In this document: one piece after another, positions 9,087 through 18,218 of the stretch
Position numbering within the stretch: position 1 is the stretch's first letter
Layout: every line of letters begins with the position of its first letter
Assembly: GCF_000315625.1 (NCBI RefSeq)
Contig: NW_005434643.1
Span: 466,190 to 530,189, forward strand
Direction of reading: 5' to 3'
DNA from: Guillardia theta CCMP2712
Taxonomy: Eukaryota; Protista; Cryptophyta
Length of the DNA stretch: 64,000 bases
The notes under the pieces: generated by a model
What the model was told of the DNA's origin: nothing
Database searches by the model: none
Seen by the model: only the letters and a program-made list of their open reading frames with translations
Translations under genes and position numbers: made by a program

Positions 9087-10169
9087 ATGGCGGACGCTAA
9101 CGCCCCGAAGAAGCGCTCCTTCCGCAAGTTCCAGTGAGCGACCCCTCCCTCCCTCCCCCCCTACTGTCTTCTCTTCCCTTCCTCTACATTATTCGCTGCT
9201 CGCCGCAATCCAGGACATGTCATTTCATGAGCGTCGTCCAAATCTTTGACAGATGTTGCTTCCTGACCTTTCTTGATATGGCCTTGAGAGTGCTACGGGA
9301 TGGCTGCATGTTGCTGAAATGATCCGATCTCAGTCTGTCACCAATTACTTCCTCTTTCTTCATTTCTTCATGATTTATGGTCCATGTGCTCGATGAATGC
9401 ATGGGCCTCGGCAGCAAATGTTGCAACAGTTTTGTATGTTGCTCCTGATTATCAGACAACATTTGTCGCATGATTGATATTTCTTGTTCTGTCCTATCTG
9501 GTGTGCGACCGATATTGCTAGTCAAAGTTTTTCAAATGTTTTCACTTGTGGTCCACAAACATCGTTCTCCCGTTCCCGTATCCGATGCTCCTGTGCATGA
9601 GGATATTTTGTGATGTTATCTTGCAGATACCGCGGTATCGAGCTCGAAGCTTTGCTCGACCTCAACCAGGCTGACTTGATCCAGCTCTTCCCTGCTAGGT
9701 CCTTGAAAATTGCAGCCGACGCCACGTTCTGACTAGTGACATCCAACAGAATTAGGAGACGTTTCAAGAGGGGTCTTCCCAAGAAGTACTCTGTTCTCCT
9801 CAAGAAGCTGAGGAAGGCCAAGAAGGAGGCGCCCATGCACGAGAAACCCGATGTCGTCAAGACTCACCTCCGCAACATGGTGATCTTGCCCGAGATGATT
9901 GGATCAGTTGTCGGTGTCTACAACGGAAAGTCCTACGTCTCCGTTGAGATCAAGGTGTGTTGATCGAGCACATCTCTCCCTCCCTCGCTCCCTCGCTTCC
10001 TACATTTGTTTCTCTTCTCCCCCTTTCCGTGCTGGTGTAGTGACAAGCGAGCCAGGCTGAGATGGTTGGAACTTATTTGGCTGAGTATTCCATTACTTAC
10101 AAGCCCGTCAAGCACGGAAGGCCTGGTATCGGTGCCACGGCCTCTTCCAAGTTCGTTCCGCTTAAGTAG
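9087..10169 (+). CDS. RPS15: 40S ribosomal protein S15 (uS19), 4 exons
   Basis: [21 protein letters not shown]...[26 protein letters not shown]...[25 protein letters not shown]; GT-AG introns at 9134-9626, ~9699-9749 and ~9955-10055. Confidence 0.97.
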
Positions 10170-10594
10170 ATTTTTTCATTATGGGTAGAAGTTGATAGAA
10201 TTCTTTGGGGATTACTTGGTGTCCTTGCCTCGCCCTAGCTCGGACTTCTCTTCCTTGTTGGCTTCTCCCTCCCTCACCCGCTCATCTCCTCTACTTCCCT
10301 CATGAACTCCACTCGTTGGGATCCCCAGATCTTATTCGCGGTAACAAGTGCCTCGAACCCTCGTTTAGCAGACATCAACATCCGATCATTAGAGCTCTCA
10401 TTCCGTTTCCTAACTCTTCTTGTATTGCATCAAAGTTAGAGTGCAAGCTCGACATCAGCGCCTGCTGCTTCATTCACAGTTGCCACCAGCGTCTTGGGTG
10501 GCCTGCCCAGAGATCAGCAAGATGGAGCCGGCAGAATGAAGACAGCAAGCGGGAAGCAAGGAAGGAAGCAAAGAACGGCAGGAAAGAAGCCTCC

Positions 10595-11081
10595 TTACTG
10601 CATCTCTTCGATGTCTCTTCCGACGATGTCCCACATGATCACTGTCCGATCCCCTGACGCCTGCTACAAGTCAACAAGAACCAGATTGCTTGAAGCGCAA
10701 CTCACTGAGAAAAGTCTCCACTTCCTCTGAAACCACAGCCTGCTCTTGCCAGGTGAGACTTCTAGGCTCTCAACCTCGAACGTTCACCTCGAGTCCTTCT
10801 CGGCCGTATCCTGCTCCCTCTTTTCGCAAGGAGGTACAACGATCACACTCGTAACGAGATGCTTGTGGCCTAGACAAGTTGCACACTGTCAACCTTGATC
10901 TATCGGATCAACACGCGCATGCACGCCCTTCTGCCTCACCTCTGTACACTTTGCCTTGCTCCGATCCGAGACGTCGAGCTATCTGAGCTCCCCGAACGAT
11001 GGCGCGTACGATTCGAATTCCCGTTGCTATCCTGCCGACCATACGAGCCGATCGGAACGCTGGCGGCATCAGGGGCGTGAG

Positions 11082-11142
<61 letters not shown>

Positions 11143-14100
11143 GTTCAAGCTCAGGCACCTGTAATGGCCTTCTGCGTGTTCTTCACTCCCGTATTCTTCC
11201 CGATGCTCTGCTCGCAGATGGTCGCGTTGGGCGAGGAGACGATGGGGGGAACGAAGGTGTCAGTGGTTGGGTCTGTGGCTGACAGGCTGTAGTCGAACTG
11301 GAACTTGTACAGAGCAACTCCAACGCTGACGACGACGACGAGGATGTCGAAGTAGGTCCACACCTCGACGGGAACGAACATCCACTCTCTTTTGATGACG
11401 GTCTGCCCCAAGAACTCGAAGACAAAGGCAGAGAGAACAAACAGGGTGATGATGCCAGCAATGGGAGAGTCGCGACCCAGGCAGTCGTTGAGCGAGGGGT
11501 CGGGGTTGATGTCAGGGCTCAAGCTCAGGCCAACCGCAAGGTCTCCGAGGATGAGGAGAAGCATGGTCACGGAGAAGCTGACCGAGTCCAGGAGCCTTGC
11601 CAGCGCTACCTTCCTGTGAGGAGGTCAAGCGCAACGGATGTGTCAAACGCGAGCTATTACCAGCCTGATATTGCAACTGACATGCTGTGCAAGGGAATGC
11701 TGTTCATGTAGACATTTCCATTCTGACAGCCGCGGAACACCAGGATCTTTCCCTGATACTTGCATGCACTGCGGAAAGTCAGACGAGGCTTCGGTCAGCC
11801 AGCAACCTCTACCAGCATGAGTTGACTGGTATCTGATGATCCCACGACTTCAAGGGCTCAGAGAGGTCGACGTCATCCTCCACCTTTCCTCTCCAGATCT
11901 TCATGGTCCCATCCATGGAGGTCGTGAAGAGGACGGGCACTTTCAGACCTGTAAAGACGTTGACGCTCGTGACACATCCTGAATGCCCCAGCAGCTGCTG
12001 GGCTGCCTCGCCCAGCTGCAGGTCTATGATCTTGATGGCTCCGTTTGAACAGCCGGCGGCGAGAAAGTTCTTGGTCACGGCCATGGTGTTGACGACGAAG
12101 TAACCTTCAACCTGCCATCTAACTGTCAGCTGCAGCTGGCAGCGAGCAGGCCAGCAGACCGCCTTTGCTTTCATCATGACATCCACAGAGAAAGAAACTT
12201 TCCCCAGCAGTGATTCCCCAGCCTTGTCGTCCCTGTAGACAAACCTATCATGGCAAATTGAAGGTATGGAGAGGTCTTCACCACTCATAGAGCAACACAA
12301 TTACGTGCTCGTCGCCCAGCAATCGTTTCAGGTCTAAAGTATAGGAGGCTTCCCAAACGGGCCTTTCTCTCGAGACAGATGCCGTTTGAAACTTGTCGGT
12401 TTGAAACAACAGCCTGCAGAAGTAAGTCTTGCTCTTGTTGGGCTTGGTAGGGTCCTGATGCAACATCAGTCTGAAGAATGTTGGGCCAACAAGCTGGTTG
12501 ATCGTACAGGCAGGTTCTTGGCTCGCTCGATCTCAACCTGTAGACGAGACACATCTCGAGTGGCGATCTTCTCATACTTGACGCGCAAGAAGATCTGGGT
12601 GCGAGTGCCCTGGTAGTGCTCGGGATCATCGGAGTGCTTTTCTGCTGCCAGCTTCGAGTCGTCGAAGGACATGCTCGTTTGAAGAATGAAGTCCATCGAG
12701 TTCACTCCTGGCACAACAAGACAAGGGAGTGAGAAATCAACCCCGACATGCCTCATCCCCGCACACACCTGAATCGAAAGACAGGACTCTGAAGCAATCT
12801 GCTGAGATGACGTCCCAGATTCGAACCGTCTGCTATAGTTAGCAGGAGATTGTTGACACGGAGGCGAGGCTCACAGCGTCTAGCGATGCTGTGAAGAGCT
12901 GCTGCGTTCCATGCGCGTCCAAAATCTTCATGCTCGTCACTGAGTCCCGATGTCCCTTGTACACGGTGATCGCTGTCCCCGTCTCAATATTCCACATGAT
13001 CGCCCGGTAGTCATGAGAGGCTGGAGGAGGGTTGAGCGCGTCATAGCATGCAGCAGACAGTGGGCCAGCAGATTGACCTGAGAAAAGGCGGAGACGAGGG
13101 ATGATGTGCAAATCGATGGCAACGTGCAACTTAGAGTTTCGTTTCTGTTTGAGGCTTGTTGCGTTGATGAGGAAGAACTCAAGCCTCTTGGACGTATGGT
13201 GCCACGTGATCTCGAGCTTGCAGCCTTGTCGTCACAAGGTAACAGACAAGGGAAGCAGGGAATACCGAGAGATTGCAGACATGCGATCCATCTTTCATCA
13301 TGGTGAAGGTCTTGGTTACGACGAGGTCGCTGTGGAGGAAGAACAAATTCAGTATGCATAGAGGGCTCGAATCTCCTTCAACTCACTAATTCGCTTTGAT
13401 CTCGAACAAGTCCGCAAATGGCAGGTAGACCGCACCTATCTCATCTTCGTGGCCGTCCACTACGGATTGCTCGTACCTGGATCTCACTCGATCAAGAACT
13501 GTAACGGCTGACACGCTTACTTTGAACCCACAGAGTGACTGTAATGAGCGTGTCCCGCCCTTCCGTTTGAAACTCGAGACGCTCGTTCCACACACAATTC
13601 TTCGAGACGATCGCAACTCCGCTGCACTTCCTGAAAGATTTCGCAGCCTCGACGACATGGGTGCAAACAGCCGAAATCAAATCATGGTGCCCTTCCATCA
13701 TTCGGATGCATCTCTTTGTAGCGGTAGAGAACATACGAACAATGGCGTCGTAGGAGCCTGTGATCAGAACCTCTTCCCCATCAACCTCTGCCACCCACAT
13801 GCATGAGACGGCATCGAGGTGCCCCTCAAACATGCTGATGTACAGTTTGTTGGCAGGATCTGTATATCACACATCAACTTGTCAGCACCAGAGGCATGCG
13901 GAAACAGTTTCATACCAGCATGCTGCTCCAGGATATCGCCGTACTTGTCTGTGACGTACTCGGCCCTTCGCTTCAACACCGGCACGTTGTCGTTGATGTT
14001 GAGGAGGTCTCTTCGCACCAGCTCGTCCTTGGTTTCCTCTGCCTTGACCTGCAGCGCCACATCTGCTGACACGAGCGCGCGCTTGCTCGCGTGAGGCTGA

Positions 14101-14290
14101 GCCATTGCGGGGGAGCTATCAAGGTTGAGGGGCCTGCACTATGCCTGACTTGAGGCAATCACACTGATCTCTGAGGGCGGAACCTGCTTCTGAGTCAACC
14201 AGAGCTTGCTGTCGCAGTCACCAACAGCACTCGGTTGCAGTTCAAGTGCCCTCATGCCATACGGTTTGAGCCGCCAGCGTGCCTGGAGCA
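10595..14290 (-). CDS. WD40-repeat protein with inserted C2 domains and a voltage-sensor-like (S1-S4) domain; multi-exon, start approximate
   Basis: WD repeats: GHLDAVSC..TGSYDAIVRMF; GHRDSVTS..TASLD; GHSGCVTS..TTSMDGTMKIW; final GHKHLVTS..ASGDRTVIMWD. C2 motifs: WNERLEF; LQVEIERAKNLP..PVWEASY. TM helices: ILGDL, FVFE, YFDILVVVVS, then an Arg-periodic exon at 10940-11059. Confidence 0.8.
11083..11140. repeat. (CAG)n tract inside an intron
   Basis: Directly visible; lies in the 11060-11158 intron of the minus-strand gene. Confidence 0.95.
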
Positions 14291-16762
14291 TCAGCTCAAG
14301 TCAGTGAACGCTCTCTGACTTCATCATCAACTTTCGATCGATTTCACTTCCGACGAGCCCGGCAAGAACCCGCTACTCCATTGAAGTGACAGCATCAGTC
14401 GGAGCCTGGGCGCATGACAGCGTAGGCTTGTACTGAGGCATCTAACTGACCTCGATCTGACTCTACTAAGCCTCATCAAGCATTCCCTCAGCGGGCCAGT
14501 AGTCACGCTGCCGCGATGATCCTCGTCTCTCCTCCCTTACCGGCAAGCAGTCTGAGGCTCAGGCGTCGACAGCCATTGGGCACCGAACGGTAGCTGCCTC
14601 ACCCCGACCGTTCCGTGAAGCAGCCTGCTAGTTGTGGCGCCCGGCACCGACTCGTCGGAGACGGTCGGTCGGTCCGGGGGGCCGCCCCGGGCCGGGCCCG
14701 GGCCCACTCCGGAGTCCCGGACGGCGCCGTTCACCGGCGTGGCGCGGTACGGTCACGGGTGACTCCGGCGACTCGGAGGGAGGGCCGAGTCCGATGGCCC
14801 GGGCCGCCAAGTCACGTCCCGGTCACGACTACGGTACTGACTTATTAGTAGTCACCCGACTCGGCCGCGATCGGACGGGCACGCCGGTGCCACCGTGCCC
14901 GGCCGCCGCCGGTGGCCGACCGTGACTGTCGAGTCCCGGCGGGCCGGGCCCCTGGGCCCCGGGCCCGGCCCACCCGTGACCCGGACCCGGCCCGGGCCGG
15001 GCGGCCGCCCGCCGCCGCCGCCCCGGACAGTGCCGCTGTGCAGTGCGGTGACCGCAGGCGGCTAGCCAAGTGCTGAAGTCACTAACCACAGTGAGATGCG
15101 GCGCCGCGCCCGGCGCCGCCGACGGCGGCCCCGGCGCGGAGCCTCGGCGGAGTCCAGCAGCCTGAGTCACGGGAGTCGGACTCGCCCGCCGCTCCGACCG
15201 CTCACCGTGCCAGGCCGCCTCCTTCCTTTTTGGGCCACGAGGGTGACGCCCGGGCCCAGTTCGCAGTCAGATGGCTGACCACCTATACCACCCCCCATTC
15301 ACCCTTCTATCACCCCCTGTTTTTACATTCAGCTGATCTCAATCCCTGCAACCACCCACCCCCTCTTCGAGGACATCCGATTCCCGCGCTGTCCGTCGAT
15401 CCTCATCACACCCCCTTTCCCGCCAGATCCGTAAAAGTGAGTATTACAAACTCGTGCAAAAACCTTTTAAATGCTTCCTCTTTGGTACATCATCAATACA
15501 AAAGTAGTTTTATTCCAGTTCCCGGCAATGCGGTGGTAGGGTCCTTACCAGTGGGACATGGGACCCGTATTCGAGAGGGGAGAGGATCAACTTCCAACGT
15601 GGTGGTGGTGTACCCCAACATACTAGGGGTGGTTGAGCCAGCAAAGACTCAAATTCTGCAAGCCTACAAGCACTAAAAATAGCAACAAAAAGCTATACAT
15701 CTGATATATAATGTACCAGCATGTCGCAAATAATTTTGTGGTGGTAGCATTCTTTTGTACCATCAATCTTCTTTTCTACCGACATGCGGTATCACGAATT
15801 TATTTTGTCTGTACCAAAGATTCTGGACTTTCTGTGGTCAACAGGGCACATACCCACCTAGATTACTAAAAATTGAAGCCCTTCGGCTTTGGATGTCGGG
15901 TGGAGGGTTGTCATCGTCATCGTCGCATTCGGACGGATGAACCCCTCTCTAAGGGCGGATCCTGGTGAAAGGAGTGGATAAGGGGGGTGGTACATTTGTA
16001 TCCAGCTACCGGTGTAAATTCCCTGATACAATCATCTGTCTCCTATGGTGGGTGCACAAAGCGAAGGCCTGCAGGGTGGGTACTCATTCAAAATTTCAAT
16101 TCGATACCCTCAGGGGGTGGTATCACAACAGGGTGTGTATGGGGTAGTAATTCACACAGTCCACCCAGGACCGGTCCTTTTAGATCAATCTTCTTGCCAT
16201 GACCTAGGGGAAAAGGGGGTGGGAGCAAAAGTCCTAATCTAATGTGAGGGTGGAGACTGTCCGACTAAAGGGGTGGAACCTTCCACAGGCTCTCTCACCC
16301 CCTGCAAACTACCCCTACCCACGTTGACCTGTACCCCACCCCCACAAATATATTCATCTCCAAGCACCCATCCTTTAATTGGATGGATTGATTCGGTTTG
16401 ACCAAGAGCGTGACCGCTACCCATGGAACCAGACCCCCTACCCCTTCTCAATATACCCCTACCCATAGAATCAGTGTTTATTGGTGATCAAGGTCTATAT
16501 CTATACCAATTCTTCCTACTCCTAGGTACACCCTACCCTACCAAAAAAGTTCTGCTACAGCACCCACCCTTAGACATTTGAACCCCACCCTGTATTGATT
16601 TCTATGCCTCCTAGCTTACCACCCCCACCAGCTAAATTGGAACTTTCGCTCTTGTTTGACCAGCATCTACCCACCCTGCTGACATGTTCCACCCCACCCA
16701 TTTTCAAATATAGTACCCCACCCCGCAGATTTCACTCGGTCTGGTTTTGCCGCGGCGGCAAC

Positions 16763-18218
16763 ATGGGCAGGAATGTGTCCCTGCAGTTGAAGCTCGTGAA
16801 TGGCGCGACAGTCGCAGTTTCCGTCCCCTCTTCTTCGACAGTGTCCGCTTTGAAGAAGATCGTGGCGGAGAAGGAATCCATACCAGTAGAGAAGCAGCGG
16901 GTGAGTGAAATGGATCCTTGTTGTTATGGCGCCATCCAGCCCGTCCTGCGTTGATTTGCAATACGTTGATTGGGAGCGCCATTGGAGTGTTTATGTCATC
17001 ATGTTGCCATTGATTTATGTGTACACTTTGTATTCTCGATTTATGTGCTTGGCACGATCAACGGTCCCTGCATTGTGAGAGGGAACTGACATAGAATCTT
17101 TCGTGAGAAGCAATGCGAAACCCACTATCCTCGGTGTTTCTGTTTCAACAACTGTTCTTATTTTCTGTTGCTGACATGTTTTCCTTCAGATTATTTATGC
17201 TGGGAAGGAGCTTGATGATGCAAGCACCTTGGCCGAGAGTGAAGTTGAATCCGGCGCACAGATGTTCGTGGTAGTGCGAACTGCAAAAGGACTGCAGATC
17301 CACGTCAAGACTCTGAAAGATCGCTTTTTCATCATCAACGCTGACCAGACTACCACCGTCCTTGACGTGAAACATAGAGTTGCAGAACAAGATTCCCAAT
17401 GGGAGGTTACGCGCCAGCGCATGATCTTTCAAGGCAAGGAACTATTGGACTCAAAACTCATCGTCAACTGTGGGCTCCATGACGAAACACCAACGGTCCA
17501 CCTAGTCATGCGCCCTCCAGCGCCAGGAACAGCAAGGAGGCGAAAGGACGACAGCTCTCTCAAGACGAGCACTAGCGCGAAATCAAAGTCTAGGAGTTCA
17601 CCAGTGGTGAAGGTTGAATCGAGTGCGTGCGCGAGCCCTGAAGACGACTACCGTGATTGCCGTGTCAACGGTGACCTCATCACCGAGAACATTCCCATGG
17701 AGTTTGAGACTGCATGGTCTGAGTTCGAAGTTGAAGCCAGATCCACATCGGCATCGGCACAGTGGGAGAACGCGGTCCAGCTGATGCCTACTGGAGGGCA
17801 CGGGAATTCTCCTGGATCAGATGAGAGCTTGGCTGTGATTGAAGCTCTGGATGTGAGCGCGATCGACCTTGGGACTCTTCCTTCCTCATCCCCAGTGTTC
17901 ACTGACATGGTTGCCAACACGAAGGTTGAAGGCTTCGAAGAGCTCCCAGTGCCGTCGACACAGGGTAGGGCTTACGACCTGAGCAAAGTAGATGAAAAGC
18001 TTCGCAAGCGGCTGCTGAAGAACCGTCTCTCTGCGGAGAGATCCAGACAAAGGAAGCAAGCCCATGTGGAGTCACTGGAGTTCGAACTTTCTTGTTGCCG
18101 GTCAGAGAATGAGTATCTCAAGAAGAAAGTCGCATCGCTGGAAGCTCAGTTGGCAGCTCTCTCCATGGCAGCAGGGTCGAACCAAAGCGCCTACCGCAAG
18201 GAAGTCGCCGTCTCCTAG
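16763..18218 (+). CDS. Tandem ubiquitin-like domains fused to a bZIP transcription factor; 2 exons (16763-16900, 17190-18218)
   Basis: UBL1 TVSALKKIVAEKESIPVEKQR|IIYAGKELDD; UBL2 TVLDVKHRV...QRMIFQGKELLD...TVHLVMR; bZIP RKRLLKNRLSAERSRQRKQAHVESLE plus a heptad zipper; phase-0 GT-AG intron. Confidence 0.9.

Follow-up and report, generated by a model that had tools for sequence, protein, structure and literature searches.

A 64,000-nucleotide stretch of Guillardia theta CCMP2712 DNA (contig NW_005434643.1, positions 466,190 to 530,189; hereafter the window) contains, on its minus strand, an expressed gene whose coding region spans positions 10436-14105 of the window. The gene has 18 exons and encodes an 896-aa protein with the domain order WD40-C2-WD40-C2-WD40-VSD-WD40. 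A sequence-only reading of the window had claimed that a four-helix voltage-sensor domain is inserted inside a WD40/C2 protein at this locus, and this observation is confirmed here. The features of the gene are as follows.

10436..14105 (minus strand): whole coding region, 18 exons, 896 aa
11660..14105 (minus strand): exons 1-12, N-terminal tail, WD40 blades 1-6 (up to strand 6C) and the two C2 inserts
13109..13638 (minus strand): C2 insert 1 (aa ~138-260, introns included) in the A-B loop of blade 2, permuted in sequence order (strands 4-8 before 1-3)
12094..12597 (minus strand): C2 insert 2 (aa ~377-494, introns included) in the A-B loop of blade 4
11159..11612 (minus strand): exon 13, pre-S1 helix, S1, S1-S2 loop (D-C-x-G-R-D), S2, S3 and most of the long S3-S4 loop
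11523..11582 (minus strand): S1 (aa 635-654) with Asp648
11379..11465 (minus strand): S2 (aa 674-702) with F687-x-x-E690, the charge-transfer-centre motif
11286..11369 (minus strand): S3 (aa 706-733) with W-x-Y-F-D713 and Ser720
11060..11158 (minus strand): intron 13 (99 nt), holding a pure (AGC)n microsatellite at 11083-11141
10940..11059 (minus strand): exon 14, the S4 helix and its cytosolic extension (aa 776-815), with basic residues at 778, 781, 785, 791, 794, 798, 804 and 805
10598..10869 (minus strand): exons 15-17 (10787-10869, 10705-10738 and 10598-10659), strand 6D and blade 7, the last WD repeat
10436..10501 (minus strand): coding part of exon 18, C-terminal tail and stop codon

The sequence-only reading had named a separate origin of the transmembrane exons, or a different reading frame of the S4 exon, as results that would overturn it. 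To determine if the exons belong to a single transcript, we examined transcript data. Spliced transcript contigs from three studies (runs X1, X2 and X9) cover 10150-14450 on the minus strand and give the same joined form, lacking all 17 introns. The raw RNA reads (run X22) show splice junctions but cover only the 3' end of the gene, where junctions of exons 15-17 were seen both in these reads and in the contigs. The spliced ORF stays open over all 18 exons, with GT..AG introns of 44-99 nt. The transmembrane exon and the 120-nt S4 exon are included exactly as had been proposed. The S4 exon has GT/AG borders and the right phase, as the last base of exon 13 plus two bases of exon 14 make Ala776. 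The record length between 10501 and 11159 is 299 nt, equal to 62+34+83+120, and the per-bin depth fractions fit 10940-11059 and 10787-10869. After S4 the chain goes straight into GKVYRGHKHLVTS and ASGDRTVIMWD, the last WD repeat, and, as had been claimed, no pore or phosphatase follows.

To examine if relatives share this architecture, as the sequence-only reading had proposed to check, we searched 1.84 billion representative sequences. Only 14 hits were obtained, including 919-954-aa proteins with the module at the same place, and more full-length members were found subsequently. One hit, P0003, is a low-complexity tandem-repeat protein and was dismissed as a false positive. The window protein aligns end to end with this small family of 886-968-aa proteins (E 1e-102 to 3e-109, 27-29% identity). 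Named members come from the cryptophytes Geminigera and Rhodomonas, and the rest are environmental eukaryotes. In one relative, P0001, the whole architecture is a single uninterrupted ORF on 16-24-kb genomic contigs. The family is unannotated: source names say only 'WD40 repeat protein', and no precomputed Ion_trans hit is on record for the full-length members. The nearest relative outside the family is a cryptophyte VSP-type protein, P0004, which shares the D-C-x-x-R-D loop motif and the loop cysteines, and whose tail matches the start of the TPTE2/Ci-VSP phosphatase at E 4e-5. A word search with the sensor region of P0004 found only itself, and an Atlas feature search with full-length P0001 gave only generic WD40 clusters at 0.81.

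Exon 13 encodes three hydrophobic helices, with Kyte-Doolittle peaks at aa 635-653, 675-693 and 708-726, and an amphipathic fourth helix follows. The helices carry the motifs that had been pointed out from the sequence, namely LILGDLAV in S1 (D648), SAFVFEF in S2 (F687-x-x-E690) and YFDILVVVVS in S3 (D713). In 13 family sequences at 21-40% identity, D648 (Asp in 12/12 sequences), C668, F687, C757, R781, R791 and R794 are invariant, while E690 (12 E and 1 D), D713 (11 D and 2 E) and R785 are nearly invariant and Ser720 is present in 13/13. These motifs are more than chance, and the conservation covers buried charges and two loop cysteines. The charge-transfer centre, an S2 aromatic residue with an acidic residue at +3 plus an S3 Asp, is present. 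The S4 of the window protein is 58-61% identical to that of P0001. Its conserved basic residues, five of them at invariant or nearly invariant positions, lie at 778, 781, 785, 791, 794 and 798, with spacings of 3, 4, 6, 3 and 4, and only 785/(788 neutral)/791/794 are in a triplet register. An S4-only family profile found no solved S4 in the PDB at E<=10. These observations leave undecided whether S4 satisfies the criterion of a basic residue at every third position, and S4 is not the clean R-x-x-R ladder implied by its description as Arg-periodic. Basic residues flank the cytosolic ends of the helices and acidic residues lie in the outer loops; the arrangement of four transmembrane helices with both termini on the cytosolic side is inferred for the window protein by alignment with P0001, whose AF2 models show four long helices.

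We next asked whether the module is homologous to voltage-sensor domains. Profile and fold searches used individual exons and family members rather than the spliced window protein, which was analysed by script only. The exon pieces of the window gave no Pfam Ion_trans (PF00520) hit at E<=1, and single-sequence searches of the transmembrane and S4 exons against the PDB gave only noise. In contrast, Ion_trans hits 7 of 14 family members, and P0004 scores 30.7 bits against a cut-off of 25. A family profile that includes the window exons hits solved voltage-sensor domains in the PDB, with CaV1.2 at 7.8e-8, NaV1.8 at 4e-6, the Hv1 chimera at 7.9e-5 and TPTE2 at 2.5e-3. In these alignments the S2 segment aligns to S2 of CaV/NaV sensors and the S3 segment to the wN.lD motif of solved sensors. 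Membership in the profile family thus has support from the relatives but not from the window's own exons, which by themselves do not settle it. Protein-language-model neighbours are Ion_trans clusters.

Whether a voltage-sensor fold is predicted at all had also been named in advance as a critical point. The AF2 model of the module, made for P0001 (28-40% identical to the window protein), has a pLDDT of 79.5 and superposes on solved sensors. The top VIA-align hit is the Ci-VSP sensor (Z 10.9, rmsd 3.8, 131/136 residues aligned), and the next 12 hits are all channel sensors; the top 13 rows are all S1-S4 domains. However, this Z is only about 2 above generic helical bundles. The top 48 Foldseek hits are all NavAb/CavAb/Nav1.7 sensors, although at E-values of 0.03-0.2, and an ESM-Atlas shape search with the sensor model gave only noise at TM<0.5.

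The remainder of the protein was assigned in the same way. Pfam WD40 and propeller families hit the window exons, and exons 1-12 align colinearly with P0001 and P0009, relatives that carry WD40 and C2. The 28-strand order in the full-length AF2 model of P0001 (pLDDT about 85-95 in the blades) maps colinearly to the window protein, consistent with seven WD repeats closing into one propeller. Exons 15-17 align with P0001 strands 833-900. In this model the sensor lies between strands C and D of blade 6 and the C2 domains in loops of blades 2 and 4. The C2 profile (PF00168) scores 6e-37 in P0001 and 9e-41 in P0009. Insert 1 was mapped from the P0001 model and its C2 hits, whereas exon 9, within insert 2, alone hits C2 at E 0.0063 (profile positions 20-71, 17 bits against a cut-off of 22, for half a domain) and aligns to the C2 of P0001 at 413-511 (E 6e-37). 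Judged by the ligand positions of synaptotagmin C2A, the Ca2+-binding aspartates of loops 1 and 3 are present in P0001, P0039-P0042 and P0009 but replaced in the window protein and in P0028. Foldseek with the full-length model returned only ordinary seven-bladed propellers (ODA16/DAW1, Ytm1, Fbw7 and LIS1, E 1e-14 to 1e-11), and among the best of these matches we saw none carrying C2 domains or a transmembrane domain inside its blades.

Collectively, we regard the following as demonstrated, and the architecture as very likely correct: one expressed gene encodes a seven-bladed WD40 propeller with two C2 domains and a four-helix voltage-sensor-type domain (S1-S4, aa ~614-806) grafted into its loops. 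Both ends of the sensor lie on the cytosolic side, as inferred by alignment, so that the propeller is tethered under a membrane. The family is conserved in cryptophyte algae and in uncultured eukaryotes, and its sensor is most closely related to that of a cryptophyte VSP-type protein. What the domain does is inference. We propose, with a probability of roughly 0.5, that the sensor is functional and that its five to six conserved basic S4 residues would move through the conserved Phe/Glu/Asp charge-transfer centre when membrane potential changes. In this view S4 continues as a roughly 39-residue helix ending about six residues before β-strand 6D, so its displacement would pull or tilt blade 6/7, or the whole propeller, relative to the membrane. 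This would switch the binding of partner proteins, in the way that S4 drives the phosphatase in VSP. In most family members the C2 domains keep their Ca2+-binding aspartates and would add Ca2+/lipid-dependent docking, whereas in this species those ligands are lost. Gating charge movement was not measured, no functional data or binding partner are known, and contacts between S4 and the propeller and the orientation to the membrane were not examined. The interpretation offered by the sequence-only reading, a voltage-gated scaffold in which S4 motion acts on the closing blade, is supported only in part. Its structural component holds, with the refinement that the sensor does not simply precede the closing blade but replaces the C-D connection of blade 6, so that S4 leads into strand 6D and then blade 7; its functional component is plausible but was not tested here.

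Only a handful of uses of S4-type sensors outside ion channels are known, namely VSP, Hv1, TMEM266, SLC9C1 and sensor-cyclase fusions (PMC13095418), and each of those discoveries opened a field. Literature searches, including reviews that were checked, found no paper linking a voltage sensor to WD40/C2. If the sensor works, membrane potential could directly gate a protein-protein docking platform, with Ca2+ as a second input through the C2 domains in most members. This would be a new class of voltage-sensor effector in cryptophyte algae and related protists, giving electrical control of scaffold assembly without any channel or enzyme, a reading that we hold tentatively. The family offers a testable system for how S4 motion can be transmitted to a β-strand rather than to a helix-linked domain, and could provide a natural template for voltage-controlled binding modules.

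The closest known systems are the voltage-sensing phosphatases (Ci-VSP, TPTE/TPTE2), which likewise have a pore-less S1-S4 sensor whose S4 continues as a helix into a cytosolic effector, and which also contain a C2 domain. In the window protein, however, S4 is followed by GKVYRGH and a WD40 β-strand rather than a PTEN-type phosphatase, the sensor is an internal insert in another domain rather than an N-terminal module, and the effector is a scaffold, not an enzyme. Hv1/VSOP and TMEM266 are also stand-alone sensors without a pore domain and with a conserved S1 Asp, but here the sensor is embedded in a roughly 900-aa cytosolic protein. SLC9C1, the sperm Na+/H+ exchanger with a sensor, and voltage-sensor adenylyl cyclases are examples of S4-type sensors coupled to non-channel effectors (PMC13095418), and SpSLC9C1 is among the fold hits at Z 8.5. 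Their effector is a transporter or an enzyme, the order of domains differs, and none has the sensor inserted inside a soluble repeat domain.

An alternative is that the module is a voltage sensor by descent only and now serves as a passive anchor, holding a WD40/C2 interaction platform at a particular membrane with no voltage-dependent output. The irregular S4 charge spacing and the lack of a match to solved S4 helices are consistent with this, as is the loss of the C2 Ca2+ ligands, which shows that functional decay occurs in this lineage. Many S1-S4 folds, such as those of TRP channels and polycystins, are not voltage sensors, and they also appear among the fold hits. However, a passive anchor has no need to keep charged residues buried in the membrane, yet D648, E690, D713, R781, R785, R791 and R794, together with the gating Phe687, are invariant or nearly so across lineages that share only 21-29% identity overall. 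We consider this alternative possible but less likely than the voltage-controlled scaffold.

A less likely alternative is that the sensor itself is the effector and, like Hv1, conducts protons or other ions through its own crevice, with the WD40/C2 assembly regulating or localising it. The S1 Asp lies in an I/V-L/V-x-D context that resembles the S1 of Hv1/VSP. In Hv1, Asp112 is the selectivity filter (PMC10377628). Hv1 structures are hit by the family profile at 7.9e-5 and 0.019 and by fold at Z 8.9; the structures hit by the profile and fold searches include 3wkv and 5oqk. However, calcium and sodium channel sensors and Ci-VSP score better than Hv1. S4 lacks the Hv1 R-x-W-R-x-x-R signature, as the family has R-I-L/V-R-A and no Trp (IRIVRAIVR in the window protein), and there is no C-terminal coiled coil, because a β-strand follows S4.

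Finally, an artefactual fusion, through a separate gene for the transmembrane exons or chimeric contigs, might be raised because the contigs are assemblies of presumed RNA origin, one of which runs on into the neighbouring RPS15 gene, but it is effectively refuted by the intron-free contigs of three studies, the ORF open through every junction and the identical domain order in relatives, one of which carries it as an uninterrupted genomic ORF.

The window is eukaryotic DNA with many short introns. To determine if the WD40, C2 and transmembrane (TM) exons belong to one transcript, as the sequence-only reading had proposed and had set as its test, transcript contigs from three studies and raw RNA-seq reads were aligned to 10150-14450. 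One spliced record per run covered the whole stretch on the minus strand, and fifteen CT..AC (= GT..AG) joints were listed. The two joints around the proposed 120-nt S4 exon were not among them, because one lies next to a masked trinucleotide repeat, but they follow from the data all the same. The contig has 299 nt between 10501 and 11159, which equals 62+34+83+120, and the depth fractions in the bins 10726-10869, 10870-11013 and 11014-11157 equal what exons 10787-10869 and 10940-11059 would give. Raw RNA reads, from a library that covered only the 3' end of the stretch, confirmed the last three junctions. Joining the 18 exons gave an open frame of 896 codons, with an in-frame stop upstream of the ATG. 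The observation made from sequence alone therefore held, and the exons that had been spliced by hand are correct, including the 120-nt exon. The main features of the locus are as follows.

14105, minus strand: ATG of the 896-codon frame
11083-11141: a perfect (AGC)x19.7 microsatellite inside the 99-nt intron that separates the S1-S3 exon from the S4 exon
10940-11059, minus strand: 120-nt S4 exon
10787-10869, minus strand: 83-nt exon
10436-10438, minus strand: stop codon
9610-10170, plus strand: ribosomal protein S15/uS19 gene (PF00203, E 1e-21) with short introns

Because the length of the microsatellite-bearing intron is a multiple of three, intron retention would add a poly-Leu run after one stop codon. 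The S15/uS19 gene converges on the 3' end of the WD40-C2-sensor gene; poly(A) read tails lie at about 10214, and one transcript contig runs across both genes.

Hydropathy analysis of the encoded protein showed exactly three strongly hydrophobic segments (aa 635-653, 675-693 and 708-726), followed, after a loop of about 50 residues, by an Arg-rich amphipathic helix (aa 777-806). Everything else is WD40-like or C2-like. Pfam detected WD40 in several exon translations and a half C2 domain in exon 9 alone (E 0.0063), but found nothing for the TM exon or the S4 exon on their own, and single-sequence searches of the PDB were also blank. A protein-language-model search of the TM exon pointed to Ion_trans clusters (49 of 60 neighbours, score 0.90), which we treat as a lead only.

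To find relatives, we performed an exhaustive phmmer search of the TM exon against 1.84 billion cluster representatives. Only 14 hits were returned. They include proteins of 929, 954 and 919 aa that carry the module at the same relative position, fragments consisting of the module plus a final WD repeat, and one 487-aa Rhodomonas salina protein (P0004). A word search added four more full-length clusters. Named members come from the cryptophytes Geminigera cryophila and Rhodomonas salina, and the rest are MMETSP transcripts or environmental sequences. The spliced window protein aligned with them from residue ~40 to ~870 at E 1e-102 to 3e-109 and 27-29% identity, and is thus a divergent member of a real family. 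Sources call these proteins only 'WD40 repeat protein', and none of the full-length ones has a precomputed Ion_trans hit. A 92-aa fragment of the family (P0020, in the cluster of the 929-aa protein P0001) is filed in NCBI as a Klebsiella pneumoniae hypothetical protein (WP_185964671.1, on a 279-bp contig), most likely through contamination of that assembly. In one environmental eukaryote the whole of P0001 is a single uninterrupted ORF on genomic contigs of 16-24 kb, and the WD40-C2-sensor-WD40 order therefore owes nothing to splicing models or transcript assembly. In this environmental relative the gene's neighbours, at L001 11283-12548 and 2390-5227, are a guanylate/adenylate-cyclase-domain protein and a 945-aa ankyrin-repeat protein. 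All are long ORFs without apparent introns, so that organism is intron-poor, unlike that of the window.

We next asked if the module is a voltage-sensor domain. Four independent lines of evidence agreed. First, Pfam Ion_trans matched 7 of 14 family modules. The match was above the curated cut-off in P0004 (30.7 bits), and in the family module P0005 it reached profile position 125, which covers S1 to S4. Second, a profile of the family, with the window exons included, hit solved sensors and essentially nothing else: CaV1.2 repeat I at 7.8e-8, NaV1.8 at 4e-6, a NaChBac chimera at 1.5e-5, the Hv1 chimera 3wkv at 7.9e-5, TPTE2 at 2.5e-3 and Hv1 5oqk at 0.019. The alignments paired the family's S2 F-x-x-E and S3 W-N-Y-x-D with the same motifs in the channels.

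Third, a structural model was examined, since the lack of a predicted sensor fold would have counted against the sequence-only reading. An AF2 model of the P0001 module (pLDDT 79.5, pTM 0.69) has four long helices, the last being 42 residues long in the domain model and 39 in the full-length model. An exhaustive structural comparison ranked the Ci-VSP sensor first (Z 10.9, rmsd 3.8 A, 131 of 136 residues), followed by CaV1.1, NaV1.5, CaV1.2, NaV1.7, CaV2.2, Kv3.1, polycystin, CatSper and NaVEh. The fold Z-score is, however, only about two units above unrelated helical bundles, and the models are of a relative that is 28-40% identical. The top 48 Foldseek hits were all bacterial Nav/Cav or Nav1.7 sensors (probability 0.75-1.0), but with weak E-values of 0.03-0.2.

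Fourth, the residues that define a working sensor are the most conserved in the family. In S1, Asp648 is present in 12/12 sequences. In S2, Phe687 is present in 13/13 and Glu690 in 12/13, the other being Asp. In S3, position 713 is Asp in 11 and Glu in 2, and Ser720 is present in 13/13. In S4, Arg781, Arg791 and Arg794 are each present in 13/13, Arg785 is Arg in 12 and Lys in 1, Arg/Lys798 is found in 10/13 and Arg778 in 10/13. The charge spacing in S4 is 3, 4, 6, 3, 4 rather than a clean triplet ladder, and only 785/791/794 share a triplet register, with a neutral 788. This resembles the R217...R223-R226 pattern of Ci-VSP. An S4-only profile found no solved S4. Two cysteines, one in the S1-S2 loop (in a D-C-x-x-R-D/E motif) and one in the S3-S4 loop, are invariant, and we infer that they form an extracellular or lumenal disulfide.

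To locate the sensor within the protein, a full-length AF2 model of P0001 was generated (pLDDT 75.8, about 85-95 in the blades and 60-84 in the sensor). Its strand order reads as a seven-bladed propeller, with the following elements in P0001 numbering.

87-92: N-terminal strand, which closes blade 7
155-290: C2 domain in the A-B loop of blade 2, with permuted sequence order (strands 4-8 before strands 1-3); window aa ~138-260 (13109-13638)
396-511: canonical C2 domain in the A-B loop of blade 4
625-632: strand 6C, followed by a short pre-S1 helix, S1, S2, S3 and a structured outer loop
789-827: 39-residue S4 helix
833-836: strand 6D, about six residues after S4, followed by blade 7

Mapped to the window protein, the sensor is aa ~614-806, strand 6D is 812-815 and blade 7 is 821-865. 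The sensor is therefore an insert in the C-D connection of blade 6, and S4 is wired almost directly to a propeller strand. The interpretation offered from sequence alone, of a sensor between blades acting on the closing blade, was thus supported in part, being close to this arrangement but not exact. The first C2 domain of the family appears circularly permuted in sequence, which may be what lets it sit in a propeller loop. In P0001, P0039-P0042 and P0009 both C2 domains keep the aspartates that bind Ca2+ in synaptotagmin-type C2 domains, whereas in the window protein and in the family member P0028 these are replaced. Ca2+ input is therefore likely in most of the family but not in this species.

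The R. salina protein P0004, the only hit outside the family apart from a low-complexity false positive, has the same loop motifs and cysteines. After its S4 it continues into a sequence that matches the start of the TPTE2 and Ci-VSP phosphatase domains (E 4e-5 to 1e-4). So the closest known relative of this sensor is a cryptophyte VSP-type sensor, and the sensor seems to have been exchanged between a phosphatase context and a propeller context.

Collectively, the data establish a conserved, expressed, membrane-tethered propeller with a sensor-fold insert whose buried charges are under strong constraint. How it works is our inference, to which we give a probability of about 0.5. In this view, S4 moves with voltage as in VSP and, because it runs as a continuous helix to within a few residues of strand 6D, its movement changes the conformation of blades 6/7, or the position of the propeller, relative to the membrane. 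That in turn would change partner binding, and the C2 domains would help to hold the platform on the bilayer. Alternatively, the module may be a fossil sensor used as an anchor, a reading we consider doubtful as the conservation of the buried charges argues against it. An Hv1-like conducting sensor is less likely still, given the lack of the Hv1 S4 motif and coiled coil, and an assembly artefact is very unlikely. Literature searches for a sensor combined with WD40, C2 or a propeller found nothing. A 2024 review lists channels, Hv1, TMEM266, SLC9C1 and VSPs as the known sensor contexts, and a 2023 survey of Hv1 mentions nothing of this kind. The coupling of a sensor to a non-channel effector is already known; its combination with a WD40/C2 propeller was not described in the literature searched.

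Two further features were observed in the window outside the gene. A stretch of about 60% GC at 14500-15200, just upstream of the gene's 5' end, is full of GGGCCC/CCCGGG-type palindromic runs and is of unknown nature. At 17229-18215 on the plus strand, a single 329-aa ORF joins a ubiquitin-like domain (PF00240, E 1.9e-13) to a bZIP DNA-binding domain (PF00170, E 6e-10), an unusual pairing for a transcription factor.
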